A stretch of DNA of 64,000 nucleotides from Basidiobolus meristosporus CBS 931.73. Taxonomy: Eukaryota; Fungi; Basidiobolomycota. Shown here one piece after another: positions 27,101 through 60,689 of this stretch; the stretch's first letter is position 1; each line of letters begins with the position of its first letter. Where the stretch lies: the NCBI GenBank assembly GCA_002104905.1, contig MCFE01000244.1:1-64000 (forward strand), given 5' to 3'. The notes beneath the pieces were generated by a model, which ran no database searches, was not told the origin of the DNA, and saw only the letters and a list, made by a program, of their open reading frames with translations. The translations under genes were made by a program, and so were the position numbers.

Positions 27101-30100
27101 TAAGATTGTGCCTCAGCAAAGTTAAGAATTTAACAATGCCATTCTAGTTTCCACCCAAGTCTAGCATATCTAGCATTCCCAAGAACACCTAGCCTAGCCT
27201 GCATAGCAAACCAACTTTGTTGCCTTTATAGCCCAGCTCAACTACATACAAAACCAATATTAAACCAGAACTTCCCTACTAATATTTCTGTCACCCTAGA
27301 CAATTCTAAGATTCTGTGCTTAGTTTTCTCTTAGGTTCAGTTAACGCATTCAAGAGTTTATTACACTTTTCTCTTGAATACAACATTTCTTTGTTGAATC
27401 CCATTAGATTCAACTGCTTTACAATATGTCCTTGGCAGTAAGCTATCCAAATCTTTCCATGTTGGAAGAAGCCTGCAGAAATCAGGAAGAGCTTACTGAG
27501 CAGCTTGAAAGCAGCATGTATGAAAGAAACACTTTGATGCTTGATCACTCATAGCTTTCCAAGAAAAGATCTGACAATCATTGTAGAGATGAACTTCTTG
27601 AAGTTGTTTCTGGTTACCAAGATGAAATTGGATTTATCAAAGAAGCTCTGGAGAATGTTGCAATTGTAATTGAGAGCACACACTTATGACAATATCTCAG
27701 AGATATGTACACTTGCAATCACCATGACTGTGGCTGTTAGACAGGCTTCAGGCAACTCCACTCAAGATGCAGCAACAACCGGAAAAGAGAGCAGTCATGT
27801 GACCAAAAAGAAGTCAACTGCTACAAAAATTGTGAGATTAATGGAAGATGCTATCACTCTACTAGTGAATGCAAAGGCATCATTAAGCAGTCAAACAAGT
27901 CAGGAAGCACTTCAGAGAAGCAGCAAAATGCCAAAACTGATAATCCATATGCTGATGACAAATGCTTTAAATGTTGAAAGATGGGACATAGATCACCTGC
28001 CTCTACTGAGAAGAACTCTACACCATTGGCAAAGATACCTCAGATCCTAGATGAGAATTCAGCCAATAAATTGACAGGGTTGGAGGGAGCATATGAAGAA
28101 CCAACAGTTCAAGATTATAACAACCTCTTTGAGATTCCAGCAAAAAACTGTAACTGTTCAAGAAAAGAAGCAACCAATTGCGCAGCCAAAAGCTATAGTG
28201 GTGTCATTCAAACATAATGGTGAATCATATGTAGCACTACTGGATACTGGATCATCTAACTCTGTTGTATCACCTAATGCAGTCAAAGAACTCCAATGGG
28301 AAATAGAAAAGCAACCAGGAAAAGCTAAACTTGCAGCTAAGGACCTCTCAGCCCCAAGAATTGGTATCACCAACCCAATCAGCATACATTGTGTTAAAAT
28401 GACTATAATCCATCAAATGCAAGTTATTAACATTCCAGATGGATCTCAGGTAGTCATTGGTCTAGACACCTTCACCAAAGTTAGCTTTCACATAGGTGAG
28501 CTACCAGTTTTATATCCTGGAATCACTAAGTCTCATCCATTCCTGATGGATCAGATTCCAGAGATTATCTCTCCCTATCTGGAAGCAGAGGAGTCAACCC
28601 CAACTTTCAAGCATATTCTCAATCAGTCAAATTGGAAATTCAACTGGTCAATGAAAGAAACCAAGCTATTCCCAGGAACAGTCTCTGCACTATTCCAGAA
28701 TCCATTGTTATGCTAGAAACCCCACCTGGTGAGTCAACATGGAGGTGGCAATACCCAATTCCACATTCTTGTCAATACTTAGTTGATGAAATTGTCCAAA
28801 AGTGAGCCAACAAGGGAATTATCACTCAAGCCCCTGTCATCACAACATTCAACAGCCCTTTGATGCCTGCACCCAAGAAGGATGCAAATGGAAATCTAAC
28901 TTTGAAGAGACCTTCTTACACCTTAGACCTCTGAGCAATCTTCTCCAAGAAGTTAAATTTCCAACTCCAAGAATCCAGGATATCTTTTTCTCACTATCAA
29001 GCGCAAAAGTATTCTCCAAATTTGACTTGAAGGATGCATATCACCAATTCCAGATCCATCCTGATCATCAGCATAAGACCTAACCCTGGTCTTCTCTCAG
29101 CCTGGAACAAGGCTCATGACCAAGAAGTGATGTTGTGCATCAACATTTAAAACTTAGCCTATTTTACTTGGCTCAATAATCTAGTACTCTAACTGATTTT
29201 CCTAACCCAAACATAACTAATTCCAGTTATGGTTGATTTTATCACTTCTCAGAATCTATTTTTAGCTGTCACACCTGATCATCTTTCATATGGTCATTAC
29301 ATCTTCAACTGATTTGCTAAGCCTCTCAAAGTGATTACTCAACTGAGATCTATCCAACCACTTAGCAGTTGCCAAGACATCAGCAAATTAATGATGCAAT
29401 TTCTCATTTATCTTATGCACCTATGAACACCCCAGCTGATTTCAATTAGTCCAGTCTCTTGGCACTTACTACTTTAACTTGATCAGAGAAATATAAATAG
29501 AGATTACTGAACCTTTTGGTTTAGTGTGTGTCTCAACAAAATTACAATTGTGCCTCAGCAAAATTAAGAACTAAACAATGCCATTCTAGTTTCCACCCAA
29601 GCCTAGCATATCAAGCATTCCCAAGAACACCAAGCCTAGCCTGCATAGCAAACCCACTCTGTTGCATTTATAGCCCAACTCAACTTTATACAAAACCAAT
29701 ATTAGACCAGAACTTCTCTGCTGATATTTCTGTCACCCTAGACAATTCTAAGATTCTGTGCTTAGTTTTCACTTAGGTTCAGTTAACTCATTCAAGAGCT
29801 TATTACACTTTTCTCTAGGATGCAACATATAGTATTGCTGTCAAATGTCTGCAATCCAGGGGATTTACACCATAACTCACACCTATTATTACTACCCAAA
29901 CACCAATACTAAGAACATCATCTTCCCACTGAGAGAATGTATAGAAGTCAGCATGAAATTGAAGCAAAGCTGGCAAGCTATAAGTCATTGGCCAGAATAT
30001 GGAATTAATTGGAAACCATAGATATCTAAGATAGAGGGTATCTGTTAGAGTAAAAGCTTTCCACTGGGAGCAATGCATTTGCTTTTCAACAATATCCCTA

Positions 30101-32463: not shown

Positions 32464-34200
32464 CCCTATGAAACATAATTCAGTCCTATGAGTGAATCCC
32501 ATCCAGACCAGCAGTCAGGATCCCATTTAGTCACTGTAATAATGCCAGCAGCTTGGAATTAGTGACCTTCTTAACAATCTTATGACAGGATCACAATGGC
32601 ATTTTGCTAATTTTACTACCAAATAAAGTGATAAAACTTGACAAGATTTGATTGGCGCTGTGACAATAATTACATGGCATTGTTGCAGTCTTATTGTGCT
32701 CTGCAACTATTTTGAATGGATCTAACCAGCCAGGACATCCAATTGGCTTATATGGCAAAAAACCTGATGCTATTTTAACAGCCTCATAGCAAGACTCTGA
32801 TGGCATTATATCAGCAGTATGGCAGCCTACAGCTGGTTCTGTATAATGCTTTTGGACATGTTGCAATGGTAGCATTTTTAGATTTGAATGCCATGCAACT
32901 ATTATCACATGCTGGAATCAGGAGAGTCTTTGAGTCATATGTTGCCAGCCACATGATGGTTGTCTACTTGTACCATGTACATGGTAGGTTGCATCCTGGA
33001 ATGACTTTGGCAAGAAGTGGTAATAAATTCTCAAAGCCCCCATTACTGATTTTAGTGAAAACTTACCACTTTGCTAGCCACTATGTTACATCACTCACCA
33101 GTAGATGGATTACTGGGCTCACTTGGCTCTATAAAGCATCCTTGGCATTTGTTTCAATGGGTGTTGTCTCATTGCATATTGGGATTTGACCAAGCTAACA
33201 TGTAGTACTGCTGTTTGGGGAGATAGGCTCACAATCCATCAGTGAACCTTCTATATCAAAGCTATCACTCTGCATGCCATATTCAAAAGGCTGAGGTGAG
33301 TCTAAAGGCATCACAAACTCACCTGACTCAGTTTGTGGAAGGTGACAATGATTGCCAGGTGCCAATATAGAAGTATCAACTGGCCAGCAAGATACTGTTA
33401 ATACAGTAGTGACTGATAAGTGGTCAAATATGACTTGTGTGGCAAAGCACTGGCCAAGATCCTTGTAGTACTTCCTATGCTGTCTGTGTGCTTCATGTCT
33501 GAGAGGCTTGCCACAATAGCCACATGGTCTTTTTTCGCTTCTCTTAGGTCATTGAGTCAAAGTAGTCTTGTCCATGGGGTAAACGGTTTGACCTTCAACA
33601 ACATAATGCTATTATATCACATTTAGGTCAATACCATGCGAACTTAAGACAGTCTTATATTTGAGACATCACATTACATGAATGTAAGATTCAATGATGA
33701 CCTGCTGTGATACATTAAACATACCTCCCGCTAACCCCACTACTGATGGCAACAGAAGAACGGTTGGACAACAGCTTGCTTTCACATTGAGTGCAACAAG
33801 CAGGGCTACATCCAAAAAAAGCCCTGTGGACAGTGTGCCCATTGAAGGTAATAATACAGACTCCTCAGGCTCTCAGTCAAGTAAGCAATTGAGAACCTCT
33901 GTGGAGCCACAAGCTGACCATTATGCTCAGGCAGATGAGAATGTAGCAAACACAGTACCCTCAGTTGAAGATCAGCAAGTGGCCATGATAACATCACCAC
34001 CACCCACATTAGCAAATAGACTTGTTCCATTGGATAGTGCCACATAGTGCCAGCCTGTTTATGGTGCCGGATTGATCTGGCACTCTACGGCACTATCTGG
34101 CACTATAATTTCTACCATGATGCCTGTGGTATGATACAGTTACTGGTAATTTTACTCAATCTTACTTATATTGCTCAGAATAGTGCTTTCCTTGCTTTAT

Positions 34201-35085
34201 TTACTCTTCATAATGCTCCAGACACATTTCCCTCAGTGGATGTCTTCTTGTATGAGCATACTGTGCATTAATAAGTATCTTAACTATTTTACCTATCCTG
34301 CTGTTTTCTCCTATATATGACTTTCCTCTGTATTTACCTGCCAATATGCTGAATCTCTCCAGATATCCAAATGTGTGCTCTACCCTTACTCTGAAATGAT
34401 TAAATATCTCATTGTAGAGCTTCTGCTTCCTGCTAAGTACACCATTTGTTGGCTTCCTATAAGCTGGAATACATCCTAATCTCTGACAATCCTCTCCTAT
34501 ATAAGCTAAGTCTGCCATACATTTCTCCCCTCTACTGAATTCAGGATGATTCTCTACCCAGAGTGCTTTGTCATGCCTACTTCCAGCAAATGGCCCACTA
34601 AACCAGATGATGTTACCCTCAATGTCAGACAGTGCTTGAAACTTCACACAGTGTGCCTTGTACTTGCCAGAATAAAAGTGCCTCTGCCCTCTAGAAGGTC
34701 TGTTAATCCTCACTGGGAAGGTATCCAAAATACTCCTGATATGGAACCTGTTGCTGAACACTCTGGGATATGGAAGTCTATTGGAGCTTCTGAACCTAGT
34801 ATTCCAAGCTTGCTCTAAGTCATTCATACCCTCTGCAAGGTGGTTCTCCATTGCTGTCAGCTGGGAATGAATGCTTCTAGGACTTTTGTTGCCATGGATG
34901 GTGGGATGAAACCTTGTAGGGCAATAGTTCTTGTAATAGCAGAGAAGCTTGACAAGGGATCTCCTTGAGTAGATTGGGGTTGATGGTCCACAGTACTTGG
35001 AATAGATCTCCTCTAGTGTGTCAAAAGGAAATCCAGTGGTAGTGATGGGATTGATGAGAAAAGACCATTCAGATGAGTAAGTCAT
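34201..35085 (-). CDS. PIF/Harbinger-type DDE transposase (DDE_Tnp_4-like), 294 aa, outer copy, open frame
   Basis: ILDTFPV (D1), YSGKYKAHCVKFQ, GPFAGSRHD, MADLAY (D2), RVRVEHTFGYL (E). Confidence 0.92.
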   Translation of the reverse strand: MTYSSEWSFLINPITTTGFPFDTLEEIYSKYCGPSTPIYSRRSLVKLLCYYKNYCPTRFHPTIHGNKSPRSIHSQLTAMENHLAEGMNDLEQAWNTRFRSSNRLPYPRVFSNRFHIRSILDTFPVRINRPSRGQRHFYSGKYKAHCVKFQALSDIEGNIIWFSGPFAGSRHDKALWVENHPEFSRGEKCMADLAYIGEDCQRLGCIPAYRKPTNGVLSRKQKLYNEIFNHFRVRVEHTFGYLERFSILAGKYRGKSYIGENSRIGKIVKILINAQYAHTRRHPLREMCLEHYEE

Positions 35086-36087
35086 ATTAAAATTGGTGGA
35101 TGATTGTATTGAGGCGGTTTGAATTGATTTGGCGCAATCCGCCTTATTTATCTGATTTTTAATACATTATGGTTAAATCTCCATCAATTGCCATGTATCC
35201 CATCATTATGTTGCAAAAATCATCCATAAACAATGCCTTGGTACTTTTATTGATGCTTTTATCATAGGTTTATAATCAAATAGGAAATCAGCAATTGATG
35301 TGATCTGATCCGTGTCAACGCGATCCAAAATGCATCATGCATAATAGACTTGTTCCATTGTACCGTGCCAGGGTGCGCAGCGCGATCTGCGGTTGCAAAG
35401 AACAATCGGGCGCAATATTATAGCTACCAGAAGGCAGGATTGTTCTTGGACGATTTTGCACTATGTGGGACAATCTCGCACACTATGGCACAATCTGACA
35501 CAATGAGGTTGGCGCGGATGATTGCGCCAACTCATAATGCTTGCATCACGTGCGCAATCGGATACCGCTATAATGGCAGGTAAAATCCGGTATTCGGATA
35601 TGTTTCTTTAATGTAAATGGAAATAAATGTGTATCACACTATAAACTATACTGATACTTACCATTTTGGTTACCCTCACTCCAATTGGACGGTATTTCAG
35701 TGGTTAATTGGTCCAAAAGTATCCTGAAGCTGGCAGCCCCCAATTGGCTCATTGACTACTGAAAAAGCTACCTGATTTGCGATCAAATATCCCATTTTGC
35801 CCATTGAGCAAGTAAATCCCTGATCCTAGTGATTGGGCAAGGTGTCATAGCTAGCACGCAAGCAATCGTGTAGGTGCAAAACAGATCCAATAGCTGCACT
35901 GGTATTACAGATGACGTATATATATGCAGGGTGTTTATTTATAGGGGTTCAGTCTCAAATGTGAAACGACCTTGATATTACTTATATCAAAAATTTGATG
36001 ATCACTGATTTGCAATGGCTCGATTTGGATCGCAAAAAAAAGGGTTGTCGGGATCATTACAAATGTGATTGATTCAAAGCGATTGCA

Positions 36088-37335
36088 TCATCTTCTCCTG
36101 GGTTTTTTTCTCACAGGGATTACTACTGAAGCATTTGGTAGTGACTCACTTTGCACACCTATACTACTTCCTGGCTGACTATCATCTTGGCTACTTGTGT
36201 ATTTGTAGTCAGTATTTTGCCTCCTAGTTGATGAGTGCGATGCTACAGCTTGGCCGCGCTGAATTGCTCCAACTGAACCAACTGAACCGGCCTGTAGTGC
36301 CACACGCTGACGTGTTCTTTTACTTGCCAAGGGCTCTGGTGGTTGAGTCACTTCATGTTGGTCATCATCAGTCAGTTCACCAGAAGTAACTTGCTGATGG
36401 TCAGGCAAAACGGCACGCGCAGGCGCGCCTTGACGCGTTCAGATGGCCCTTGGCTGAGTTCAATGTGATGCCGCATGTTGACGCAACTCGGTCCGCTCCA
36501 ATGGACTTGTGTCTAAATGAGCAGTTTGGCAAGTTCTGGTAGTTTTGCTCTGAAGCGTGCGCGTTGACCCGACGCGCGTTGACTTGACGCGGGGCATTCT
36601 GGTAAAGGGTGTTGGCGTGGTCTGGACTGACGTGCGCCGGCGCGCTGTGGTTGCAAGAGATGGTAGGGAATCCAGCAAGGCGTGCTGGCACAATCTGGAT
36701 CATGTTGCTTGCGGTCTGTATTCTTCCTCCTGAAGCTCACCATCTGATTCCTCAAGGTATTCACTTACCCTCTGTCTGATACTTTGGAGCTGTTGCCTGG
36801 ATGAGTCCTGTGTATATTGCTCTTGGAAGCCACTTAGCTCTACTAATATATCACGTAGTACATTAGTCATTTGAGGCAAAAACTCATTCAAAATCTCTTT
36901 GGTTCCCAAAGTTGAGGCACAAACGGATGCGTCCAGCCTGTACTGTGCACATTGCACGCAAAATCGTTCCCGCGCGGCTTCCTCGTCAAATCCCCTCACT
37001 CTCAGCTCATTCTTGATTTCAATACTTGTCTTGTTATATATCTTTTTACATACATTGGCTGGCATCTTGATGTAGAACTCATGCCACAGCTTTCTACTCA
37101 AATTCTTCCATCTTTGTTGGCTCTCTGAGGTATCTAATTCTGCTAGATTAATCAGTAGTGCCCAAATATCTGTATGAAGGCTCATCATAGACACTTGGGC
37201 CATACTAAAATCATTTGGCAAGAACTTGAACGGATCCGACATCGACTTTTCCGGTCCGGACCGCGCTTGTGAGCTGGGGGATGGGTTTTGTCTGGGTTGT
37301 ACTAAAGATGAGTTGAGGCTTGGTATGGGGACCAT
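36088..37335 (-). pseudogene. PHIS accessory gene (putative Myb/SANT/trihelix-like DNA-binding protein), inner copy; one frame of ~415 codons broken by two TGA stops
   Basis: ORFs 36700-37335, 36460-36693 and 36088-36408 are in one frame; stops at 36700-36702 and 36460-36462 are sense codons in the outer copy. Confidence 0.8.
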
Positions 37336-37694
37336 AGCAACGGATTTGGATACTTATACAGCAGTATATTTGCATCAACCTGGTCTTATATGAAATATAT
37401 ATGAAAACTAAAGTGATTGTGGAATTTTCCATATATTATGCATGATGCATCTCAGATTGCGTTGACACGGATCAGATCACATCAATTGCAGATTTCCTTT
37501 TTGATTATAGACCTATGATTAAAGCATCAATAAAAGTACCAAGGCATTGTTTGCGGATGATTTTTGCAACATAATGATGGGATACATGGCAATTGATGGA
37601 GATTTAACCATAATGTGTTAAAAATCAGATAAATAACGCAGATCGCGCCAAATCAATTCAAACCGCCACCATATGATCATCCATCAATTTTTAT
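37336..37694. promoter_or_regulatory. Putative bidirectional promoter between the PHIS accessory gene and transposase
   Basis: 359-bp AT-rich gap between head-to-head start codons; function inferred from position only. Confidence 0.55.
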
Positions 37695-38579
37695 ATGACT
37701 TACTCATCTGAATGGTCTTTTCTCATCAATCCCATCACTACCACTGGATTTCCTTTTGACACACTGGAGGAGATCTATTCCAAGTACTGTGGACCATCAA
37801 CCCCAATCTACTCAAGGAGATCCCTTGTCAAGCTTCTCTGCTATTACAAGAACTATTGCCCTACAAGGTTTCATCCCACCATCCATGGCAACAAAAGTCC
37901 TAGAAGCATTCATTCCCAGCTGACAGCAATGGAGAACCACCTTGCAGAGGGTATGAATGACTTAGAGCAAGCTTGGAATACTAGGTTCAGAAGCTCCAAT
38001 AGACTTCCATATCCCAGAGTGTTCAGCAACAGGTTCCATATCAGGAGTATTTTGGATACCTTCCCAGTGAGGATTAACAGACCTTCTAGAGGGCAGAGGC
38101 ACTTTTATTCTGGCAAGTACAAGGCACACTGTGTGAAGTTTCAAGCACTGTCTGACATTGAGGGTAACATCATCTGGTTTAGTGGGCCATTTGCTGGAAG
38201 TAGGCATGACAAAGCACTCTGGGTAGAGAATCATCCTGAATTCAGTAGAGGGGAGAAATGTATGGCAGACTTGGCCTATATAGGAGAGGATTGTCAGAGA
38301 TTAGGATGTATTACAGCTTATAGGAAGCCAAGGAATGGTGTGCTTAGCAGGAAGCAGAAGCTCTACAATGAGATATTTAATCATTTCAGAGTAAGGGTAG
38401 AGCACACATCTGGATATCTGAAGAGATTCAGCATATTGGCAGGTAAATACAGAGGAAAGTCATATATAGGAGAAAACAGCAGAATAGGTCAAATAGTTAA
38501 GATACTTATTAAGGCACAGTATGTTCATACAAGAAGACATCCACTGAGAGAAATGTGTCTGGAGCATTATGAAGAGTAA
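37695..38579 (+). CDS. PIF/Harbinger-type DDE transposase, 294 aa, inner copy, open frame
   Basis: Same motifs as 34201-35085; 7 amino-acid differences, all after residue ~205. Confidence 0.92.
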   Translation: MTYSSEWSFLINPITTTGFPFDTLEEIYSKYCGPSTPIYSRRSLVKLLCYYKNYCPTRFHPTIHGNKSPRSIHSQLTAMENHLAEGMNDLEQAWNTRFRSSNRLPYPRVFSNRFHIRSILDTFPVRINRPSRGQRHFYSGKYKAHCVKFQALSDIEGNIIWFSGPFAGSRHDKALWVENHPEFSRGEKCMADLAYIGEDCQRLGCITAYRKPRNGVLSRKQKLYNEIFNHFRVRVEHTSGYLKRFSILAGKYRGKSYIGENSRIGQIVKILIKAQYVHTRRHPLREMCLEHYEE

Positions 38580-38865
38580 ATAAAGCAAGGAAAGCACTAT
38601 TCTGAGCAACATAAGTAAGATTGAGTAAAATTACCAGTAACTGATATCATACCACTGGCATCATGGTAGAAATTATAGTGCCAGATAGTGCTGTAGAGTG
38701 CCAGATCAATCCGGCACTATAAACCGGCTGGCACTATGTGGCACTATCCAAAGGAATAAGTCTAATATATGGAAAATTCAACAATCACATTAGTTTTCAT
38801 ATATATTTCATATAAGACCAGGTTGATGCCAATATACTGCTGTATAAGTATCCAAATCCGTTGCT

Positions 38866-40098
38866 ATGGTCCCCATACCAAGCCTCAACTCATCTTTAGT
38901 ACAACCCAGACAAAACCCATCCCCCAGCTCACAAGCGCGGTCCGGACTGGAAAAGTCAATGTTGGATCCGTTTGAGTTCTTGCCAAATGATTTTAGTATG
39001 GCCCAAGTGTCTATGATGAGCCTTCATACAGATATTTGGGCACTACTGATTAATCTAGCAGAACTAGATACCTCAGAGAGCCAACAAAGATGGAAGAATT
39101 TGAGTAGAAAGCTGTGGCATGAGTTCTACATCAAGATGCCAGCCAATGTATGTAAAAAGATATATAACAAGACAAGCATTGAAATCAAGAATGAGCTGAG
39201 AGTGAGGGGATTTGACGAAGAAGCCGCGCGGGAGCAATTTTGCGCGCAATTTGCACAGTACAGGCCGGACGCGTACATTTGTGCCTCAACTTTAGGAACC
39301 AAAGAGATTTTGAATGAGTTTTTGCCTCAAATGACTAATGTACTACGTGATATATTAGTAGAGCTAAGTGGCTTCTGAGAGCAATATACACAGGACTCAT
39401 CCAGGCAACAGCTCCAAAGTATCAGACAGAGGGTAAGTGAATACCTTGAGGAATCAGATGGTGAGCTTCAGGAGGAAGAATACAGACCGCAAGCAACATC
39501 ATCCAGATTGTGCCAGCACGCCTTGCTGGATTCCCTACCATCTCTTGCAACCACAGCACGCCGGCGCACATCAGTCCAGAGTACGCCAACACCCTTTACC
39601 AGAACACCCCACATCAAGTCAATGCGCGCACTTCAGAGCAAAACTACAAGAACTTGCCAAACTGCTCATTTAGACACAAGTCCATTGGAGCAGACCAAGT
39701 TGCGTCAACTTGCAGCATCACATCAAACTCAGCCAAGGGCCATCTCAACGCATCAAGGCGCGCCTGCGCGTGCCGTTTTGCCTGACCATCAGCAAGTTAC
39801 TTCTGGTGAACTGACTGATGATGACCAACATGAAGTGCCTCAACCACCGGAGCCCTTGGCAAGTAAAAAAACACGTCAGCATGTGGCACTACAGGCCGGT
39901 TCAGTTGGTTCAGTTGGAGCAATTCAGCGCGGCCAAGCTGTAGCATCGCACTCATCAACTAGGAGGCAAAATACTGACTACAAATACACAAGTAGCCAAG
40001 ATGATAGTCAGCCAGGAAGTAGTATAGGTGTGCAAAGTGAGTCACTACCAAATGCTTCAGTAGTAATCCCTGTGAGAAAAAAACCCAGGAGAAGATGA
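38866..40098 (+). pseudogene. PHIS accessory gene, outer copy; 410-codon frame with a single internal TGA (39376-39378)
   Basis: ORFs 38866-39378 and 39508-40098 are in frame; W-rich helical N-terminus (RWKNLSRKLWHEF..NVCKKIYNK), S/T/Q/R-rich tail, C-terminal RKKPRRR. Confidence 0.82.
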
Positions 40099-42912
40099 AG
40101 CAATTGCTTTGAATCACTCACATTTGTAATGATCACGACAACCCTTTTTTTTTGCGATCCGAATCGAGCCATTGCAAATCAGTGATCATCAAATTTTTGA
40201 TATAAGTAATATCAAGGTCATCTCACATTTGAGACTGAACCCCTATAAATAAACACCCTGCATATATATACGTCATCTGTGATACCAGTGCAGCTATTGG
40301 ATCTGTTTTGCACCTACACAATTGCTTGCGTGCTGGCTATGACACCTTGTCCAATCACTAGGATCAGGGATTTACTTGCTCAATAAGCAAAATGGGATAT
40401 TTGATGGCAAATCAGGTAGCTTTTTTAGTAGTCAATGAGCCAATTGGGGGCTGCCAGCTTCAGGATACTTTTGGACCAATTAACCACTAAGATACCGTCC
40501 AATTGGAGTGAGGGTAACCAAAATGGTAAGTATTAGTGTAGTTTATAGTGTGATACACATTTATTTCCATTTACATTAAAGAAACATATCCAAATACCAG
40601 ATTTTACCTGCCATAATGGCGGTATCCAATTGCGCACATGGTGTAAACATTACAAGTTGGCGCGATCATCCATTCCAACCTCATTGTGTCAGATTGTGCC
40701 ATAGTGTGCGAGATTGTCCCACATAGTGCAAAATTGTCCAAGAACAATCCTTCCTTCTAGTAGCTGTAATATTGCGCCCAATTGTTCTTTACAACCACGG
40801 ATTGCGCCGCACGCCCTGGCATGGTACAATGGAACAAGTCTAATATGTTGTCAGCTTGTACAAAGGCATTAATGAAGCAATCACATTCAGTGGCTAATAG
40901 GATAGATGCAATGGCCCAGAGAAATCAGGAAATAGTCCAGAAACAGGATGAGAAGACAATATATGTAGATCAATCAATATCCCAGGTAGAGAAAGCAGTA
41001 TCTTTGCTGCAAAGAAGGAACTCAAACAGCTCAATGTCACAGCCAAGAGTTGAGCCATTTCCTGATGTAACATCAGAGGAACACCATACAGTCTTTGAAG
41101 CACAACAACAGTGCCCAAAGATAAAGCCCACAGAGAAATGTATCACAGCATGGGAGGGAGACAATGTGGTGTTTATACCAAAGCCTAACAATCAAAAGAC
41201 ATTGAAAATCTGTGAAGCTGCTGAGTGCAACAATGAAGAGTGGGCTAATATATAAGAGGTCATCCAAAGTCTAGCACACCATCACCTTAAGGCTGGCATA
41301 CCATGGGACCATCAGGAACTCAAGGCCAAGCAGAATACACTTCACTTGTTCCATGAGCATTATTCTGGATTCAAATATGCAAACAGATTTAGATGCAGTA
41401 TTGGTGTTCTAAGAAAGTATCTTAAGAATAACAGAGACTATTAAAGGCAGAAGAATAAGGGTGCCATGGCTAAAAACCAGTGGCTTCCCCAAGAGCCCAT
41501 TACAAGAAGGGCCAAAAGCTCCAGACAAGCATCAAAGAGATGTCAGGTAGCTGGCAGAGTGCCAATTAGGCAGAAGCAGGCAGACACAGATGCACCAGCA
41601 CAACATCTATGAAGGAAAAAGTGTAGTACCACTCAAGAAGCATCCAGTCAAAGTAGCAGTGAAGGACCTAGCAGTGATAAAGACCAGCTGCTTTTACAGG
41701 AGCCCATCACAACTATGGTTGAGAGCTCAAAACAAGCAGAAAAGAAATATCAGGTTGCCAGAAGAGTGCCAGCAAGAAGCAAGCAGGCCAAAACCAATGT
41801 GCCAGAGCAGAATTCATCAAGGAGAAAATGTAGTTCTTTGCAAGAAGCACTCAGACAAAGTAGCAGTGATAGACCTGGCAGGGATAAAGGAAAAGGTAAA
41901 GAGAAAAATGTCTACCCAAGCCTGAGACAATGAGGCAAGCAAAAAAACTGCAGTTCTCACCAATTAATGCCACAAGCCTGGAATAGATAGAATCTCATCA
42001 TACCCAAGAAGAATTACCAACAAGAAAACAGCTGCTTTAACAAGAGTTGGAAGTGCAGCCAGTTGAGCTACACCCCAGCAAGGTAGATGAGTTTACTGAA
42101 AAAGGCAATTTATCTACTACAGCCCCCACATACTCCAATGTTGACAGAGTGGAGATTACACAGACAGACAAGGCTACAACATCAAGAGCTTGAAAAACTA
42201 TCACAGTGCCTTTGGTGGAATTTTGGAGCCCTAATAGGCACACCAAGAGGTTGCAGCACTTCTTCAAGAGCAGTGCTCAAGAAAACACACTTGAATATTG
42301 CAAGGACTTATTGCAAAGACTGGCAGATGAGGTGCTAGACCTTGCAGTGCCAGCTGAAGACCAGGATGTGTGGGAATCAGTGAATGAACAGTGACATAAA
42401 GCCATTGGGTTCCTGACAAAGCTGTGGAATCAAAGTGTCACAGCAGAAATACTTATTGAGTGGTGGAATATAATGGAGTTACTTGTTGAGTGTGGGGTTG
42501 TGCTTGATGTTAGCATAGAGTATAGGGACTTGTATAGGTCAGCACAATTGGCAATTGAGGTACAACTGAAGTTTCAACTAAAATAAATCAATTTGTAGAC
42601 ATGAAAAGTAAGAGAAATGGTTGAGTCAGCAAGGAGTGTGAAAAAGAGGCAATAGCCAATCATGCACCCAAATGTAGGAGGCAATAGTGTGTCTGGGATC
42701 AGAAAGTGAGTAAATTGCCAGGAAGCCAATCAAAAGCCAATTGAACATTGTTGTGATGAAAAATTTTGACTAAGTTTCTTGTGAAATCTGGGGTGCAATT
42801 ATTTTTGAACGGTCTCTGGACAGTGTCCTGACAGGATCAGTACCTCTTAATCACAGGACTTTAACTTTGTGACAGCCTTTTGACAGATTCATCTTGATAA
42901 TTTTGCATAGGG

Positions 42913-44513
42913 CTCCACATCCTCTATTGTTAACAGAGTGGAGATCCTACTGACAGACAAGGCTACAACGTCAAGAGCTTGAAAGACTATCACAATGCCT
43001 TCAGTGGAGTTTTGGAACATTAATAGGCACACCAAGAGGTTGCAGCACTTCTTCAAGAGCAGTGCTCAAGAAAGTACATTTGAATATTGCAAGGATTTAT
43101 TGCAAAGACTGGCATATGAGGAGCTAGACCCTACAGTGCCAGATGAAGACCAGGAAATGTAGGACCCAGTAAATGAGCAATGGCATAAAGCCATAGGGTT
43201 TGCACCAAAGTTGTAGAAACTTAAAGTTACAGCATAAATACTTATTGAGTAGTGGATTTTAATGGAGTTACTTGTTGAGTGTGAAGTTGGCCTTAATGCT
43301 AGTGTAGGGTATAGGGACTTGCATAGGTCAATACAATTGGCAATTGAGGTGCAACTGAAGTTTCAACGGAAGTAAATCAATTTTTATGCATGAAAAGTGA
43401 GAGTAACAGTTGAGTCAGGAAGTAAGGAATGTGAAAAAGAGGCAATAGCCAATCAATGCACACAAACATAGGAGGTGATGGAGTGTCTGGGATCAGAAAG
43501 TGAGCTAATTGGCAGGGAACCAATCAAAAGCCACTTATACATTGTTGTGATGAAAAATTTTGGCAAAGTTTTTTGTGAAATCTGGGGTGCAATTATTTTT
43601 CAACAATATCTGGATTGAGTCCTGATAGGATCAGTACCTCTTAGTTACAGGGCTTTAACTTTGTGACAGCCTTCTGATGGTGTGGTGGTGTAGAGGTACT
43701 CCTGAGAGAAGCTACATGACTCAAGGTGTGTGAGGTGTCTGATGGGTGCAATAACCGCTGGGTCTAAACTGCTAGTGTCTTTGTCAATATGTCACTATGG
43801 TAAAAGCTCCTGCTTGTCTAGCTTCCTAGGTGCTCCAAGTGTCTGCAAAGGACTCTGTGTGTCTTGTGCACTACCCTGAAAAGCTCCTTGATGGCAGGTC
43901 TGATATCTACTGTTGAAGGCAGGTGCAGTGATTAACTGCTAATCAATAAGAGAGAAGTGTTACTGATAGAAGGGCTGATTTATTGATGAGGGATTGCCTT
44001 CCCTTAAGTACTTTTCCTGGTTGCCAAGTGATTACTAATGACAAGGTTCTAGAAGATTCCAGACATCAGTGGATTTTTGATGACATCACTTTGAGCTAAA
44101 AATATGCCAAAAATGTCTTCAAAGGTTCTAAAAGGCACAGCACATCCAACCAACCAAGGATCAGCAGTCAGAAACTTGTGCCACATAGAGATACCATATA
44201 TGGTATTTAAATGGTAGGGATGGTAACACAGACTTAGGTCATGTATCACAGGTACTGATGCAGGTACTTGCCTAATGTAGATACATATATAGATCACAAA
44301 GGTGAATACCATCTGGGATAACTAATGCTAATAAGTAATCAGGGTAAACATCATATGGGGATAATACTAATAATATGGGCAAAAGAAGAATGGGATAATA
44401 CTGATAAGATAAAATATGGATAAGTACATCATAATAGCTAAATGAATTAACTTGTCTGTGGGGAGTATGTTTACCCTACCACAATTGGATCATTACAATA
44501 ATTTTCCATAGAG
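42913..44513 (+). repeat. Tandem second copy of the TRC accessory 3'/end-A segment, interrupted by a solo LTR
   Basis: ~42930-43680 repeats ~42140-42890; the terminus resumes at 44484 and ends ...TTTTCCATAGAG (44513). Confidence 0.7.
43681..44483. repeat. Solo LTR, family C (~800 bp, TGTGGT...ACCACA)
   Basis: 6-bp inverted TG...CA termini; flanks GATGG/ATTGG approximate a 5-bp TSD; the interrupted TRC terminus rejoins across it. Confidence 0.68.
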
Positions 44514-47500
44514 TAGTGTGGACAATGCTTTCCTCCTATAATGGCCAACTCCTGAAAAGTTGGACACCTTGTAATGGTGGTATTTTCTGATGTGAATGCC
44601 ATGCAACTGTTAAAATATGTAGATATTAGGACAGTCTTGTGGTCATTTGCTGCCAGCTGCAAGATGGTTGTCCATTTATACCATCTATATGGTAAATTGC
44701 ATCCTGGGTTAATTTTAGCAAGAAGCAGTAGTAAATCCACAAAGCCCTAATTACTAATATCAATGGAAATGTGCCACTTCTATAGCCTCAACATCACATC
44801 CTTCACTAGTAGATGGATTGCTGTGCTCACTTGGCACTATGAAGTATCCTTAGCATTTTCTTCTATGGGTGTTGTCTCATTACATATTGGGATTTTGCCA
44901 GACTCATGTGGGGTACTGTTGTTTGGGGAGATAGGCCTGCAATTCATCAGTGAGCCTTCTGCTTCAGAGCTATCACTCTGCATGCCATACTCAGAAGGCT
45001 GGGATGAGCCTAAATGTGTCACAAACTCACCTGACTCAGTTTGCGCAAGGTGACAAGTACAACCAAGTGCTGTTGTAGAAGTATCAAGTGGCTAGCAAGA
45101 TACTGTTTGTATAGTAGTGACTGATGAATGGTCAAATATGACTTGTGTAGCAAAGCGTTGGCTGTGATCCTTGTAAAACTTTCTATGCTGTCTGCATGCT
45201 TCATGGCTGAGAGGCTTGCTTCAATAGGCACATGGTCTTTTTTCTCTTCTCTTACAGCATTGAGTCAAAGTAGTCTAGTCCATGGGGCTAACAGTTTGAT
45301 ACTCAGCCCTGCAGTGCTCTTATATCCTTCTTTTGTCAGTATCAATGTGAATTCATGACAGTGTTGTATTTGAGACATCACACCTACATGAATGTAAGAT
45401 TCATTGATGACCTGCCATAGTAAGCACTATAAACAAAGTTGTGGCACTACTTACACATCAATATGTAACACTATTTCCCCTTTGGTTTGACTCACTTCTA
45501 TATATGTGCCGCCAAAAAATAAAGCAAAGTTGTCTGGTCCCCAACCAAACCCCACCACTGACAGCAGCAGAAGAATGGTTGGACAACAGCTTGCTTTGTT
45601 ATTTGGTGCAACAAGCAGGGCTACAACTAAAAAAGGCCCTGTGCACAGTGTGCCCACTGAACAGAATAATGCAGACTCCTCAGGCTCTCAGTCAAGTAGG
45701 CAATTGAGAACCTCTGCAGAGCCTCAAGTGGCCCGTTGTGCTCACACAGATGAGGCAGATGAGAATGAGCAAAAGCAGTACCTTCAGCTGAAGACCAGCA
45801 AGTTGCTGTCATAACACCACCACCACCAGTATTAGCAAGTCTGTTGTCAGCTCATACCAAAGCATTAATGAGATAATTTGGTGCAGTAGCCGATAGGATA
45901 GATGCAATGGCCCAGAGAAATCAGAAAAAAGCTCAGAAGTACAATGTGTGGAAAATATGTGTAGAGCAATCAATATCCCAGGTAGAAAAAGCAGTATCTT
46001 TACTGCATAGAAGGAACTCAAGTAGCTCAATGTCACAGCTAAGAATTGAGCCACTTCCCAATGTAACAGCAGAGGAACAACATAGAGTCTTGAAGCATAA
46101 TAACAGTGCCCAAAGATAAAGACCACAGAAAAACCTTTAACAGCATGGGAGGGAGATAATGTAGTGTTTATACCAAAGCCTAAAAACAAAAGACATTGAA
46201 GATTTGTAAAGCTGTTGAGTGCAACAATGAAGAGTGGGCTAGTATACAAGAGGTTGTTAGCAGTTTAGCACACCAACTCCTTAAGGCTGTTATACCATGG
46301 GACCATCAGGAACTCAAGTCCAAGCAGAATGCGCTTGACTTGCCCCATGAGCATTATTCTGGATTCAAATAAGCAATCAGCTATTAGGCCAGCATTGGTA
46401 TGCTAGTAAGTATCTTAAGAATAGCAGAAACCATCAAAGGCAGAAGGACAAGTGTGCAATGGCTAAAAACCAGCAGCTTCCTCAAGAACCTGCTACAAGC
46501 AGGGCTAAAAGCTCCAAACAAGCATCAATGAGGCATCTGGTAGCTGGAAGAGTGCCAATAAGCCAAAAGCAGGCAGACCAAGATGCACCAGCACAACATT
46601 TACCAAGGAAAAAGTGTGGTTATGCTCAAGAAACACTTGGTCAAAGTATCAGTGAAGTACCTGGCAGTGATAAAACAAGTGGCTTCCTCAGGAGCCCTTT
46701 ACAGCATGGGCTGAGAGCTCAAAACAAGCAGGAATAAAGCATTAGGTTGCCTGCAGAGTGGCAGCTAGCAAGAGCAGGCCAAAACAGATGCATTAGAGCA
46801 GCATTTATAAAGGAGAAAATGTAGTTCAATACCAGAAGCACTCAGACAAAGTAGCAGTGAAAGACATGGCAGTGATAAAGAAAAAGGGAAAAGGGAAAAA
46901 GTCCACCCAAGCCAGAGACAGGAAAGTGTAAGAAAAAAGCTGCAGTTCCTGCCAGTTAACTCTGTAAGCCCAGAACAGACTGAGTCCCAAACCAAGAAGA
47001 ATTACCAACAAGAAAACAACTGTTTTCACAAGAGTGGAAGTGCAGTCAGTTGAGCTACACTCCAGTGAGGTATATGAGTTTACAGAGAAAGGCAATTTGG
47101 CTACCACAGTCTCCACATTCTCCATTGCTGATAGAGTGGAGATCCTGTTGACAGACAAAGTATCAATATCAAGAACTCAAAAGGTCACCACAATGCCTTT
47201 AGTGTATTTTGGAACATTAATAGGCACACCTATAGGTTGCAGCACTTCTTCAAGAGCAGTGCTCAAGAAAGCACACTTGAATATTGCAAGGACTTATTGC
47301 AAAGACTGGCAGATGAGGAGCTAGACCTTGCAGTACTGACTGCAGACCAGGATGTATGGGAACCAGTAAATGAACAATGGCATAAAACGGTAGGGTTCCC
47401 GCCAAAGTTGTGAAAACAGATTGTTACAGCAGAAATACTTATTGAGTGGTGGATTTTAATGGAGTTACTTATTGAGTTTAGGGTCAGACTTAATGTTAGT

Positions 47501-47900
47501 GTAGGGTATAAGGACTTGCTTAGGTCAATACAATTGGCAATTAAGGTACAACTGAAGTTTCAATGGAAATAAATCAATATCATGCATGAAAAATAAGAGA
47601 AACAGTGGAGTCAGGTAGCAAGGAGTGTGAAAAAGAGGCAATAGCCAATCAATGCATACAAACATAGGAGGTGATAGAGTGTCCAGGATCAGAAAGTGAG
47701 AAATTGGCAGAGAACCAATCAAAAGCCACTTTTGTATCACTGTGATGAAAAATTTGATGAACTTTTTTATGATATCTGGGGTGCAATTATTTCCTGATGG
47801 TCTTTGCATGGTGTCCTGATGGAATCAGTACCTCTTAGTCACAGGACTTAGAATCTATGATGGCCTCTTGATGGGATCATTGCAGTAATTTTTCATAGGG
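44514..47900. mobile_element. TRC-type copy: transposase N-terminal part (minus, ~44514-45400), accessory gene (plus, from ATG 45506, MPPKNKAKLSG...), end A at 47900
   Basis: Reverse-complement co-linear with 24140-26200; terminus ...TAATTTTTCATAGGG. Confidence 0.8.
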
Positions 47901-47989
47901 GACAGGATCATTACAATTATTTTTCATTGGGCATACTTTTGATGGAGTTGATCAATAATGATCAAATAGACAGCATTTAAAAGCTAGTT

Positions 47990-49055
47990 TCAACCGTACT
48001 CTGGCTTCAGACTCCAATATATCAGTGCTCTGAGTTGCAGTGCTTGGTGGTGACCTCATCAAATACAATTCTCAAGATCTAATCCAGAAAAATAAATACC
48101 ATCAAATGTGTTCTGCCACTGCAATACATAATTTATATAAAGCAAATATATAGAACTATTCAGTTTTTTGAGTGGCTCATAGTTTTACACTGACCAACTG
48201 TTGCATGATTATATACTCCAATCAGGCTTGCAATCATTTGCTTCACTCATTTTTTGGCTGGCGGGGGAATTTTCTTAGGTTGATTTTGCTAAATTTGTGA
48301 AATACAGCCTCCCACTGGATTGATAAGTAAACAGAGTGATAGCTTATCCAACAGTACCAATTTTAGCCCCCATTACACTGGTGTTAGTATCTGAGAATTT
48401 TATACAACTATAGAATTCTTCCAATGAATCACATAGTACATATCTATACTCTAGTAGAACATATATGTATTAAGTATCATCAGGATCCCTACAATTTGGG
48501 GAGCTTGTTTCTGAGATCTTCTTCCATGAGTAGGTAGTTTAGAATGGCAGTTAACAGCACCAGTACTAGCATTCTCAGGTGTATTTTGAGTAGCTACATA
48601 TTTTAGTATAATCCTCCTCCAGCAATCATTCAATAATGATCTGTATCTTTTTCACAGTTCAGGATAATATCCTATCCAAAAGCTTATCTATTGGTCAGTT
48701 GGGGTCATATGATTACATATAGCAATGCACTTTATTGTGGATCTTTACCCTCAACTGCTGAAATTATGCAATTTACTTCATTAATAATAGAGCACCTACA
48801 TGATATATTTCTTGACATATTTACATGCCAGCTTAATAGACTCATATTGATAGCTACCTGCATAGCTAGTGACAGCTTCTTTAGAAGGCAAGGCCTTCTT
48901 CTCCATAGTAATATCTTCATTTATATAGTCCATTAGTGGCAATAGTCATCTTTAACCTTAGTAGAACAATAGAGTATAAGTCTTTGTCAATGTTAGTGGA
49001 AGAAGATCCAAGGCAAAGTAGACACTGTGAGAGCAGCAGGCTTGGGCTCATAATT
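47990..49055 (-). mobile_element. Highly decayed DNA-transposon-like remnant, possibly hAT
   Basis: CpG-depleted and stop-ridden; minus-strand FALDL...DYINEDITMEKKAL loosely resembles the hAT LxxDxW...HFIDxxW segment; weak. Confidence 0.3.
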
Positions 49056-49403
49056 GGTTGTAATATTCTGAGGAGTATTGGAAGTGATGTTGAGAACTAG
49101 GGCATTTACATGCTATTCACTGGTAGATTGATAGATCAAAAAAATGGTTTTTATACTTCTAATGAAGCAAGACAAACAAATATGTAGAGTTTGTTAAGGA
49201 AGCTCTCAAGAGTATGTGTGCAAAGTTTGGGGTCTTTTGGACCACTCTGAGATAAATCATAATCTGGGTACCTGATAATTTGTTGAAGATATTCTAAGTA
49301 ATTCCTGACAAGAAATTTGATCAGGGCAGAATACTAATTACAGAATAAGATCTATGTGACTAAGTCAGCATGAATATTTAGGTGACAACCTAATATTACA
49401 ACA
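49056..49403. repeat. Solo LTR, family A (copy 3)
   Basis: Homologous to 3112-3460; ends TATTACAACA; no clear TSD. Confidence 0.7.
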
Positions 49404-49720
49404 AATACAATCAAAATCATATATCCAATTTTATAGCTGCAGTTGAGCAGATAATCAGATACTTAAAAGGAACTGCTGATATCTGATTACAGTCCACTTA
49501 TAAGGGCTCAGAGCAGGATCCTTTAGTGCTAGACCTAAGCATATAGATAGTAGTCATCAATTCATCAAAGAAGCCAAAAAAAATAACTTGGTTAATTTGG
49601 TTTACTGTCCTACTCATGAATTGATAGCAGATATATTTGTGAAACCATTAGCCAGAGATAAACTTGAATATCTTAGATCACAATTGGGCCTAGTTATTAT
49701 GAGTATTTAGTTGAGCAGGA
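49404..49720 (+). mobile_element. Ty1/copia RT-end/RNase H fragment with a PPT-like tract
   Basis: QIIRYLKGT.D and LVYCPTHELIADIFVKPLARDKLEYLRSQLGL followed by GAGCAGGAG-TG. Confidence 0.8.
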
Positions 49721-50282
49721 GTGCAATAAGCTTTGTGTTATAGATAGATAACCCACCCTTTTTCCTTCAAACAATTATATACACATATCTAGTAGTACCA
49801 TAAATGACTAGCTCCTTGTTCAAAGCACTGCAGTTTTGAAGATTCCCACATTGTAGGTGATCTAGGAGTTCATACAAGTGGATCGATCTACAACAAGCCA
49901 ATCAGTCACGAGCCCAGAACAATGGGATCAAGTCCAGCCACTTTTCTGAGCAATCCAAGATTAGAAAGAATACCAGTAGACACAACACTGACTACTTGCT
50001 TGAGCAACAACAAATGGTGCGTTCAATTACAAGAATCTCTACAATTTAATCCATTCCCCGGAGCAACTAGTAAAATACAAGAGATGAGACAGCCCATACG
50101 CTGGGGAATTATACAACATGGATGGGTTAGAGTAAATAGGCGAATGCGATTCGGGATAGAGTACATCCAACTACTTGTACAAAAAGGTGCCTGGACACAG
50201 ACCGTTGCACGAAGACAGTTTTACATTTTGGAATTAGGGAGGATTGCGTGGTATGGATGATATCATAGAACGCTACGTTACA

Positions 50283-50894
50283 CTACACTACACTACTAGG
50301 AGTTCGGCTCTCTTTGACACCAAGGATGCTAGGGTATCTCCACCAACTCTTGGGTGCACCGACCTGCTTCCGGACGGACGCTAGCTCCTCGGTAGGTGGC
50401 TCCATCTTGAGCGCGGCCGGACCAGACTTGCTGTAACGCAGGTATTGCTTAGCATAGAGTAGCCATTGGGTGAATTCGATTTCGGAAACAAAGAGATCGA
50501 AGCCAATGGCGAATAGGAAGGATTGTTCGAACGAGGTGAGCTCACTCACGCTGATTCCGGAGATGTGTGACCAACTAGAGTTGGTGTAGGTGTCATCCTC
50601 CAGTACTTTGTGGGCCAAGATGACAGCCACCACGAACAGCTGCCTCTCATATCCGCTGATGCGGATCTGAGGATTCTTGGTGACCCGTTGTATGTATTTC
50701 AATGCTAACAAGAGGACCGATGGGGACACACCGCTCGTGTGAAGGATCCGTTCGATGGAAGCGCGCAGGCGAAAGTCGGGTTGGGAGCAGGCGAAGCTCC
50801 GCTGCCACATATGGGCCACCATATCCATGGCAAAATTGGCGATCTTGGGAACAAAATCACCCTGTGAATTGGAGAACAGCTCTATGGGCGTCAT
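50283..50894 (-). CDS. Pho80/Pcl-family cyclin (Clg1/Pcl5-like), 203 aa, single exon
   Basis: Cyclin box VLLLALKYIQR...LFVVAVILAHKVLEDDTYTNSSWSHISGISVSELTSFEQSFLFAIGFDLFV. Confidence 0.88.
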   Translation of the reverse strand: MTPIELFSNSQGDFVPKIANFAMDMVAHMWQRSFACSQPDFRLRASIERILHTSGVSPSVLLLALKYIQRVTKNPQIRISGYERQLFVVAVILAHKVLEDDTYTNSSWSHISGISVSELTSFEQSFLFAIGFDLFVSEIEFTQWLLYAKQYLRYSKSGPAALKMEPPTEELASVRKQVGAPKSWWRYPSILGVKESRTPSSVV

Positions 50895-52110
50895 GAAGTG
50901 ATGTCGTATGAGGAACCAATAGACAAGCGAGTTCTAGTCAGCACTACTACAGCTGCCGGGCCGGTGCGTGGTGCGAGTATATATAGCTCTCGATAACTCG
51001 ACGGCATTTGGACCCTGTCCTCGACCTCTTCCCATTGGACGGAACCCAAGTCAGTTGAGATGCAACGAATTAAGAACAAACCGGCATTTTCCAAGACCTC
51101 GTAATAAACAAATTAGGGGAAAGGATCAGAAATGACCCACTGATATGCCGGAAACCGGACTGCCACTATGATGTCCCATAGAAAACTCAATCAAGCGTCC
51201 GCAATGATTGGAGCAGCCAGATTATGACAGTTACCGTTGTCTTGCAGTTGAGCTGGACTGCACCCCTCGCTACTGAGCAAGGAAGAAGCTGGTTCAATGG
51301 TGTGGGTGACACCCATGAATCTCATCGTTTACGCTGCAACTGATGGCATCGAGGTGGCGTTGTTGTCCTGCCTCCCATTCTCCACTGCTTGCTCAACCTG
51401 GGCCTAGGATTTGGCTTGTCAAGACTCAGCATGTTGGGGAATTGAGTGAGCCAGGCTGGGACATTTGGTACACATGAAATCAGTGTCTCACCAACCACCA
51501 TGACGCGAGATGGATTATCGGCTTACCTCACGCAAGGATAGGGTTACACCATGATCTCAGCCTCCCGAACACTTTTCCCTACGGACTCCATTGATGCATT
51601 GCATAGGTCAAGCGAAGCTGGGTGAATCTCTTCACATGCGATACAAGTTTGCTCGGGTGGGTACCTTGAGATCATGGCACGAAACAGCTTCTCAACCGAG
51701 GCTCAGCCCCCTACTCATCAACTGGTCTCTCCCGTCTACCAATAGCCATGCATGGATTCTATTGGCTACCTGGCCTTCGCATCGATTAGCTATACTATGT
51801 CAGCGGCCGATCGAAGGAAACTGACACAAGCCACCACTACAAAGTTCATCCTCACACCAACCTCCCACTGCGCCAACGGCTACAGCGGGTGTCATAAAGC
51901 GATACTGCTGCTGCTCCATATCCTCGAATGGGATGGCCTCAGAGAAGATCAAGTGGATGGAATTGTACCGATTAATGCCCGCTGCTGGACACACCAGCCA
52001 GATTAATTTATTTGGAACTCAGATATGTGGGGACTCGTGATGGCCGATACCTCGAGCGCGGTAGGTAAAGCATATGTAAAATATCCAAAATATCTCGAAT
52101 CCTGGGCTGC

Positions 52111-59832: not shown

Positions 59833-59862
59833 CACCATCACCATCACCATCACCATCGCCAT
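59833..59862. repeat. (CACCAT)n microsatellite
   Basis: caccatcaccatcaccatcaccatcgccat. Confidence 0.8.
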
Positions 59863-60689
59863 TGTCCAAGCCTCAATAGGCTGCGATCAATCATCGAGGG
59901 CAAACCTGTTTTTTGCTATGCAGATGTGCATGTTGCTGATGCTTAGGTCTAGCGTCGAGTCAGATGATCTCCCCCTTCCTATCCAAGCCAGCCCACGGCA
60001 TCAGCCCAGCTCTGATCACGTTGGCTCTAACCACCGTTGCCATTGCTGTTACCAACCCAAAGCATCCCCAGCCAATACCTGGAGGGGAGCGGGAAACCTG
60101 CACCTTCCCGAGCCAAAAGTCCATAAACTCCGATAGATATGTTTACAGTTTCACTAAATATCATCTGTTTGAATGGAATGCATCATTCTTACAATCAACC
60201 ACCGCAATGCAAAGCACTCCATCGTACCTCTCTTTCCTCACGCACCATACTAATGATCCTGGCATTTATATTACTTTCACACAACCAGGCAGAAACCAGA
60301 TGTTACAGAATGATCAACCGTATCATTGATGGCATCGATGTATATTAGGCTGACATTTATAGAAATCCCGGTTGCATGATTCAATCATCCCAGCCCAGGC
60401 TGGCTGGGAGCAGATATTCCCTGTGAAAACCAAGTCACACCCGACAAAATCCATTAAATAAATTGGGACGCGTTGCGAAGCAAGGGATATTTTGCATCAA
60501 ACATACAGTCATCCTCAGCGATAGTGGACAGCGGGGATCCCAAATAAATTCGACCAATTGCTGCACTAGCTAAAAAGAAGGCGCACGCTTCAAACATTTT
60601 TTCAAATCCCAAACTATCTGATCTCTTGTGTTTTGGCTGTACATCGCGAATATTTCCCTTTGTTATCGCTCGGGAAATCTTCACTTGTC

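Follow-up and report, generated by a model that had tools for sequence, protein, structure and literature searches.

A CpG-free transposase gene in two nested PIF/Harbinger copies of Basidiobolus meristosporus and its possible recoding under a CpG-specific repeat mutator

The DNA analyzed here is a stretch of 64,000 nucleotides from Basidiobolus meristosporus CBS 931.73 (contig MCFE01000244.1, positions 1 to 64,000; called the window below), and the subject is a PIF/Harbinger DNA transposon at 34018–40841 whose transposase genes contain no CpG dinucleotide. The transposon is young and recently mobile and was present as two nested copies that were 94–97% identical. Five inverted-repeat pairs in this region were traced to a single event, in which a 3,418-bp element was inserted in inverted orientation between the two genes of its sister copy. 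The inner copy (35346–38763, minus strand) was complete, with AAT at 35343–35345 and 38764–38766. The outer copy was split by it into a left arm (34018–35345, minus strand, 96.8% identical to the inner copy), which held a terminal inverted repeat (TIR), the transposase gene and, as far as the AAT insertion site, one half of the intergenic promoter, and a right arm (38764–40841, plus strand, 94.8% identical to the inner copy), which held the remainder of the promoter, the partner gene, a non-coding tail and the right TIR; its AAT triplets were found at 34015–34017 and 40842–40844. The 15-bp TIR AGACTTGTTCCATTG was perfect at all four ends, and a 3-bp target duplication (AAT) flanked each of the two copies.

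In each copy, the transposase open reading frame (ORF) and a second, accessory ORF (the partner ORF) diverged from a 359-bp intergenic promoter region (37336–37694 in the inner copy), and a non-coding tail of about 730 bp followed the partner ORF. The transposase ORF encoded 294 aa and was located at 34201–35085 in the outer copy (minus strand; Pfam PF13359, E=4.6e-22) and at 37695–38579 in the inner copy (plus strand; E=1.4e-22). Translation in frame 0 showed that the partner ORF of the inner copy (36088–37335, minus strand) was one 415-codon frame with three in-frame stops, CpG-rich except at 36986–37230. The partner ORF of the outer copy (38866–40098, plus strand) had the same frame, one in-frame stop (codon 171, at 39376–39378) and a 15-bp in-frame deletion. 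A search with blastn also revealed an older right-end fragment of the same element at 13997–14945 (plus strand, 82.6% identical), which represents the end state of CpG decay.

The CpG count was 0 in each of the two 885-bp transposase ORFs, while 38.9 (outer copy) and 39.5 (inner copy) were expected from base composition. An earlier note, made by reading the letters of this DNA, had described both ORFs as open and free of CG, had put the expected number at several tens, and had stated that all of the approximately 28 Arg codons were AGA or AGG. The computational recount agreed with it on each point: no stop was found in either transposase frame, and the 27 and 28 Arg codons comprised 14 AGA and 13 AGG in one ORF and 16 AGA and 12 AGG in the other, with no CGN. 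The codons TCG, CCG, ACG, and GCG were also absent from both ORFs. When the synonymous codons were shuffled within the ORF, 12.1±2.5 CpGs were formed at codon junctions, and none of the 5000 shuffles reached 0. When codon frequencies taken from the neighbouring genes were used to recode the same protein, 51±5 CpGs were obtained, with a minimum of 32.

The avoidance extended to the junctions between codons. Codons ending in C were never placed before a codon starting with G (0/66), compared with 28% before other codons. Among the two-fold C/T codons, those followed by G ended in C 0 times and in T 14 times, and the remaining ones in C 38 times and in T 39 times (Fisher p=2.5e-4), and this pattern recurred in a related family (family B, below). 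Before codons starting with G, the missing C was replaced by A more than by T (0.41 vs 0.21), and NCA codons and CpA were over-represented in the ORF, with a CpA observed/expected ratio (o/e) of 1.53. In the inner copy, the CpG-free run covered 37665–38711, so that it began 30 bp ahead of the ORF and ended 132 bp beyond it.

Both transposases matched the Pfam domain DDE_Tnp_4 (PF13359) at E~1e-22, with scores of 79–80 bits against a cut-off of 24.8. All 17 invariant columns of a 20-sequence alignment were kept, including D121, D192, and E236, and the invariant residues R97, R129, and R232 were all encoded by AGR. Comparison of the inner and outer transposases showed 7 synonymous and 7 non-synonymous changes, with a ratio of non-synonymous to synonymous differences per site (pN/pS) of 0.26 (p=0.013). 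Judged from these alignments, the transposase is intact and under purifying selection. Exact look-ups with the two window transposases matched no further contig, and a word-based protein search returned a single relative.

Positions 1–50000 of the window formed a repeat tract in which the CpG o/e per kb was 0.00–0.24 outside the element. The flanks at 1–34016 and 40848–50000 had CpG o/e values of 0.06 and 0.04, and TpG and CpA were raised to 1.35 and 1.33, respectively; approximately 43 kb around the element were thus nearly CpG-free (o/e 0.04–0.06), while the genic part at 50001–64000 had a CpG o/e of 0.83. The sole CpG-bearing island of the repeat tract (35.1–37.7 kb and 38.7–40.8 kb) was within the Harbinger element. 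Since the neighbourhood itself was almost CpG-free, a point absent from the earlier note, the contrast that counts is that within the element, not that with its surroundings.

For the common ancestor of the two copies, a site was scored as CpG if it was CpG in either copy (union scoring). The union CpG o/e of the transposase ORF was 0, and that of the partner ORF was 0.74; for the intergenic region and the 3' non-coding tail, the values were 0.98 and 1.02, respectively. The parts of the young copies outside the transposase had a CpG o/e of 0.55–0.82 at present, and about 1.0 in their ancestor.

The second family, family B (P0001/L001 and P0151/L009–L011), was represented by loci from four other sequencing runs. 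Its transposase was 60% identical to that of the window element (family A) at the amino acid level and 65% at the nucleotide level; synonymous sites were saturated (pS 0.78), and pN was 0.24. The 294-codon ORFs of L001, L009, L010, and L011 contained 1, 0, 0, and 0 CpG, respectively, while the 5' flank of family B was CpG-normal (o/e 1.0 in 187 bp and 0.96 in 667 bp). Within family B, pS was 0.122 and pN was 0.013 (p=1e-9), and among 23 synonymous changes there was no gain of CpG, against an expectation of 4.7 (P~0.01). In the last 187 bp of the 5' flank, 4 of 5–6 CpGs were common to both variants despite 13% flank divergence. The two families were linked by common subterminal GTGCC repeats and a common promoter motif. 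Seven more distant homologue loci from other sources (38–45% identical) had ORFs with a CpG o/e of 0.83–1.06 and used CGN codons for Arg.

Because the union CpG of the ORF was 0 and the ORFs of family B held 0–1, these comparisons indicate that the CpG-free state of the ORF is inherited and is not a product of post-insertion decay; it is specific to this lineage. The earlier note had named three findings that would speak against its idea, namely CpG in the ORFs on recount, a CpG-normal ancestor, and equally CpG-free homologues in non-methylating hosts. None of them was observed: the recount gave 0, the ancestral ORF was CpG-free, and the seven homologue loci from other sources were CpG-normal.

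The motif common to both families, GATCGCGCC, was located at 37641–37649, approximately 45–55 bp upstream of the transposase ATG, and carried CpGs at 37644 and 37646. It was kept in L001 of family B (at about 139–147) although the flanks were otherwise unalignable, and its CpGs persisted. From its position and conservation, it is probably a promoter element.

Comparison of the inner and outer copies revealed a strong CpG-directed mutational process. Among the 134 substitutions, 44 (strict scoring) to 60 were CG<->TG/CA, and the outer copy had lost about 37% of the ancestral CpGs, the inner copy 17%. Other sites differed by 2.2% between the copies (1.1% per lineage), which gave a rate ratio of CpG to other sites of about 28. 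The old fragment at 13997–14945, with 14% non-CpG divergence, kept 5 of 37 CpGs, as this ratio predicts; at the CpG sites of the young copies it carried CA 16 times, TG 12 times, and CG 5 times. In the young pair, loss was highest in the context TCG (71%) and lowest in GCG (35%); there was no sparing of CCG, which was lost at 57%. TCG made up 9% of the residual CpG contexts in the repeat tract and 32% in genes. The C>T/G>A transitions were confined to repeated DNA, which is one feature of strict repeat-induced point mutation (RIP); another is that strict RIP is set off by sequence duplication ahead of meiosis and depends on a RID-type methyltransferase. The earlier note's claims that this genome destroys CpG in repeats (o/e 0.04–0.06, with TpG/CpA at 1.33–1.35, vs 0.83 in genes), and that the termini, promoter and accessory-gene tail of the element were CpG-rich and decaying, were thus borne out by the counts, with a rate of about 28-fold, the union values given above, and the 44–60 CpG transitions.

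The losses were strand-biased in the orientation of the element (33 CG>CA vs 11 CG>TG, p=0.001; 25:7 in the outer copy). The bias held in both copies despite their opposite genomic orientation, which argues against replication asymmetry and against simple, spontaneous decay of symmetric 5-methylcytosine (5mC). It points tentatively to a deaminase that is processive and strand-specific, or to an asymmetry linked to transcription, and away from decay of 5mC alone; the mutator may work via 5mC or via a RIP-like enzyme. Contigs from DNA sequencing runs contained many copies of the family, with variants concentrated at CpG sites. Basidiobolus is listed in papers among the fungi analyzed for methyltransferases, and no methylome statement for Basidiobolus was found in the literature.

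The partner ORF contained one CpG-free block in each copy, which is W-rich and predicted with moderate confidence to be helical. The earlier note had reported this block of about 245 bp as CpG-free in both copies, and the recount was 0 at 36986–37230 (inner copy, minus strand; 8.2 expected) and 0 at 38971–39215 (outer copy, plus strand; 8.6 expected). A CpG gap of 245 bp anywhere in the 1.25-kb partner ORF was estimated to be moderately unlikely (roughly p~0.01). In the inner copy, all 4 Arg codons of the block were AGR, while 16 of the 32 Arg codons in the tail of the ORF were CGN. In-frame stops were present at codons 212, 292, and 299 of the inner partner ORF and at codon 171 of the outer one. 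Codons 171 and 292 each differed between the copies as TGA versus CAA, the two products that decay of CGA yields; at codon 171, the TGA belonged to the outer copy and the CAA to the inner one. At codons 212 and 299, the inner copy had TGA where the outer copy had TCA, a C<->G difference outside the reach of CpG decay.

The partner protein had no Pfam match at E<0.01 (scanned to E up to 10) and no Myb/SANT signature. No homologue was found in the word-based protein search, no lead in the protein atlas, and no fold match by Foldseek, with an AlphaFold2 model of pLDDT (predicted local distance difference test) 59; only the W spacing suggests Myb, and the folded state that the earlier note ascribed to the W-rich part was not supported by these searches. 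In family B, L009:3-260 (minus strand) was the start of a divergent partner gene, in which the W-rich block could be aligned by eye (NDFS.AQVS...DIW.LL.NLAE). The first 40 codons of this gene were CpG-dense, with 8 CpGs in 120 bp.

At about position 50000, the edge of the repeat tract, the CpG o/e changed abruptly from about 0.05 to about 0.85 and the GC content from 40% to 50%, and the first gene past this edge was a cyclin-domain ORF (50283–50894). Remnants of long terminal repeat (LTR) retrotransposons were found in the CpG-empty tract, with an integrase core at 793–1377 and an aspartyl protease at 28093–28716, and their long ORFs were gone. Two tandem 207-bp units, 71% identical, were located immediately right of the element (41471–41884).

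Across the two copies, the partner ORF had accumulated 4 stops and the transposase ORF none. In simulations, a transposase with host codon use that was subjected to the same decay acquired 6–14 amino acid changes and had a 23–66% chance of a stop. These results support the recoding of the transposase gene and its protective effect, and they are in line with the earlier note's claim that the catalytic gene escapes inactivation by CpG decay, since the partner ORFs carried 1 and 3 stops and the transposase ORFs none. The reading preferred here, with a probability of roughly 0.45, is that the transposase gene was rewritten over long evolutionary time to zero CpG, by shedding of target sites under selection and under burst-like hits. 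The conserved block of the partner gene was probably rewritten likewise.

By this mechanism, the mutator would hit copies hard, possibly in strand-biased bursts. Lineages with CpG in constrained codons would lose the enzyme when hit, and the persisting alleles would be those with AGR for Arg, with NCH for Ser, Pro, Thr, and Ala, and with no C|G codon junctions. A copy could then be stripped of one-fifth to one-third of its CpGs, and of its partner gene, and still encode an unchanged transposase. Fully hit copies would be dead ends, and only CpG-free constrained sequence would outlive partial hits; that the fully hit copies leave no line may be why the master lineage keeps CpG-normal flanks. 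The immunity itself may have been the selected trait, which would make it an adaptive strategy. An extension of this reading, put forward here tentatively, is that Basidiobolus has a strong CpG-specific repeat mutator and that several classes of autonomous transposon have rid their constrained coding sequence of every CpG and yet retain promoters and ends that are CpG-normal.

Several observations weigh against this reading. The flanks, the promoter and the partner tail of the active lineage were at a CpG o/e of about 1.0. At a rate of about 28-fold, unconstrained sequence should have lost its CpGs by the time it had diverged by a few percent; the normal flanks therefore mean that the active lineage was not uniformly hypermutated, and an extra ingredient is needed, either burst-like culling or targeting of conserved segments. 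For this reason the earlier note's proposal that selection under long-term hypermutation recoded the constrained domains was retained for the recoding and the purifying selection, and was judged incomplete in its uniform form. Selection for robustness would have little to act on unless hits came in bursts and fully hit copies left no descendants. The transposase acts in trans, and the benefit in cis of an immune ORF is not obvious; hit copies would die anyway, losing the partner ORF and the CpG-bearing subterminal sites. The CpG-free run overshot the stop codon by 105–130 bp in both families, in sequence that was unalignable between them, a pattern more in keeping with a process acting on regions than with one acting on codons. 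The CpG-free partner block was only moderately significant, and its counterpart in family B held 3 CpGs in the first 46 codons and 0 in the last 100 bp.

The overshoot leads to an explanation by passive regional depletion, in which, within otherwise active copies, only the transposase transcription unit and other conserved segments would be recognized and then methylated or deaminated, the immunity being a by-product. Recognition would proceed via transcript-derived small RNAs or via homology to older sister families, selection would merely filter the damage, and the fast-diverging flanks would escape recognition until the family became multi-copy. An ORF emptied of CpG next to CpG-normal flanks in the active lineage, and a CpG-free run that continues past the stop in both families, would follow from such a process, and the excess of NCA and CpA in the ORF is what NCG -> NCA decay is expected to leave. 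It also agrees with the contigs of a second strain, in which 80–90%-identical sequence was deepest over the transposase ORF and the conserved block of the partner. However, the 300-codon tail of the partner is transcribed coding sequence as well and stayed CpG-rich, with 50% CGN among its Arg codons, and the 82.6%-identical tail fragment in the window means that tails, too, have homologous partners. The preference for A over T in place of the C missing before G gave no simple C>T footprint. Passive depletion was on balance considered somewhat unlikely. An effect on expression rather than on mutation, the second claim of the earlier note, was judged improbable. By this account, a gene body with no CpG offers no site for CpG methylation, and transcription goes on in methylated chromatin; the evidence of CpG avoidance in the ORF fits it equally, and CpG-free transgenes that resist silencing are established vector practice in mammals. 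However, the promoter was CpG-rich and contained a conserved CpG motif, which makes it an obvious silencing target, and the partner gene, which is needed for Harbinger transposition, was left unprotected.

Two further explanations were weighed. The ORFs could be CpG-free as the whole tract of about 50 kb had decayed, and open as CpG decay rarely makes stops. The surrounding 43 kb at an o/e of 0.04–0.06 would agree with this, and since CGA>TGA is the only route to a stop, little can be concluded from an open frame by itself. Elsewhere in these copies, however, the o/e was 0.55–0.82 (about 1.0 in the ancestor), the ORF was CpG-free in both copies and in family B, and the invariant residues, including three Arg, were kept and not changed to C, W, H, or Q, with significant purifying selection. 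Background decay of the tract is hardly credible, and the comparison within the element, the data of family B, and the tests for selection ruled it out as the sole cause. The sharp boundaries between CpG-free and CpG-normal sequence could instead point to a chimeric or foreign origin, either an old CpG-depleted cassette joined to CpG-normal ends or horizontal transfer from a CpG-poor donor. Such an origin is very improbable: the same mosaic was present in two families with saturated synonymous sites, it persisted in family B over 12% synonymous divergence with no synonymous gain of CpG, the 245-bp CpG-free block lay inside one continuous ORF, and the closest homologues from other sources were CpG-normal.

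If the extended reading, by which several transposon classes purged their CpGs, is correct, this would be the first natural case in which transposons have completely shed target sites as a counter-defence, and the defence would either cull copies in bursts or recognize them by their conserved coding parts. Repeat-mutating defences, RIP and 5mC decay among them, are regarded as difficult for transposons to evade, and shedding of target sites has been proposed (PMC5381629) and not shown in full. No paper on complete target-site shedding or on CpG-free ORFs of transposable elements in early-diverging fungi or Basidiobolus was found in the literature. Here, an intact enzyme gene under selection and without target sites was found together with a mutator active on the same copies, and the unprotected partner gene serves as an internal control. 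Questions of the arms race, such as what the defence recognizes, whether it comes in bursts, and how much survival is gained from recoding, are testable in a culturable early-diverging fungus. For annotators, the element is a warning that a CpG-poor repeat need not be dead. It is also a model, supplied by nature, for CpG-free genes that function in hosts that mutate or methylate CpG.

The element resembled known PIF/Harbinger transposons in its DDE_Tnp_4 transposase with an intact DDE triad, its short TIRs, its 3-bp target duplication, and its divergent second ORF. It differed from them in the duplication, which was AAT while the usual one is TWA, in a partner ORF without detectable Myb/SANT or fold match, and in a CpG-free transposase. 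A CpG-normal promoter adjoining a CpG-poor transcribed body is also found in vertebrate genes and in the L1 5' untranslated region and ORFs. In 5mC genomes, the cause of such CpG-depleted bodies is the deamination of 5mC. Unlike the depletion in vertebrates, L1, and CpG-suppressed viruses (o/e 0.2–0.5), the depletion here was total, with 0–1 of about 39 sites, and it was limited to constrained coding sequence, while the coding tail of the same element was spared.

RIP-like TpCpG hypermutation of repeats has been described in Microbotryum and other Pucciniomycotina (Horns et al., 2012, PMC3318451; Horns et al., 2017, PMC5381629). In Microbotryum, this mutation lowers the fitness of transposable elements, and selection was suggested to favour variants that shed hypermutation target sites; the Microbotryum elements still had 35 target sites (Horns et al., 2017, PMC5381629). 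The process in the present window was similar in that the C>T/G>A changes at CpG were restricted to repeats and TCG was the most mutable context; the decay of a single copy was strand-biased here. It differed in that all CpG contexts were hit and in that the host is a zoopagomycete, outside Dikarya. Unlike in Microbotryum, the shedding of target sites was complete over the whole transposase ORF in two families.

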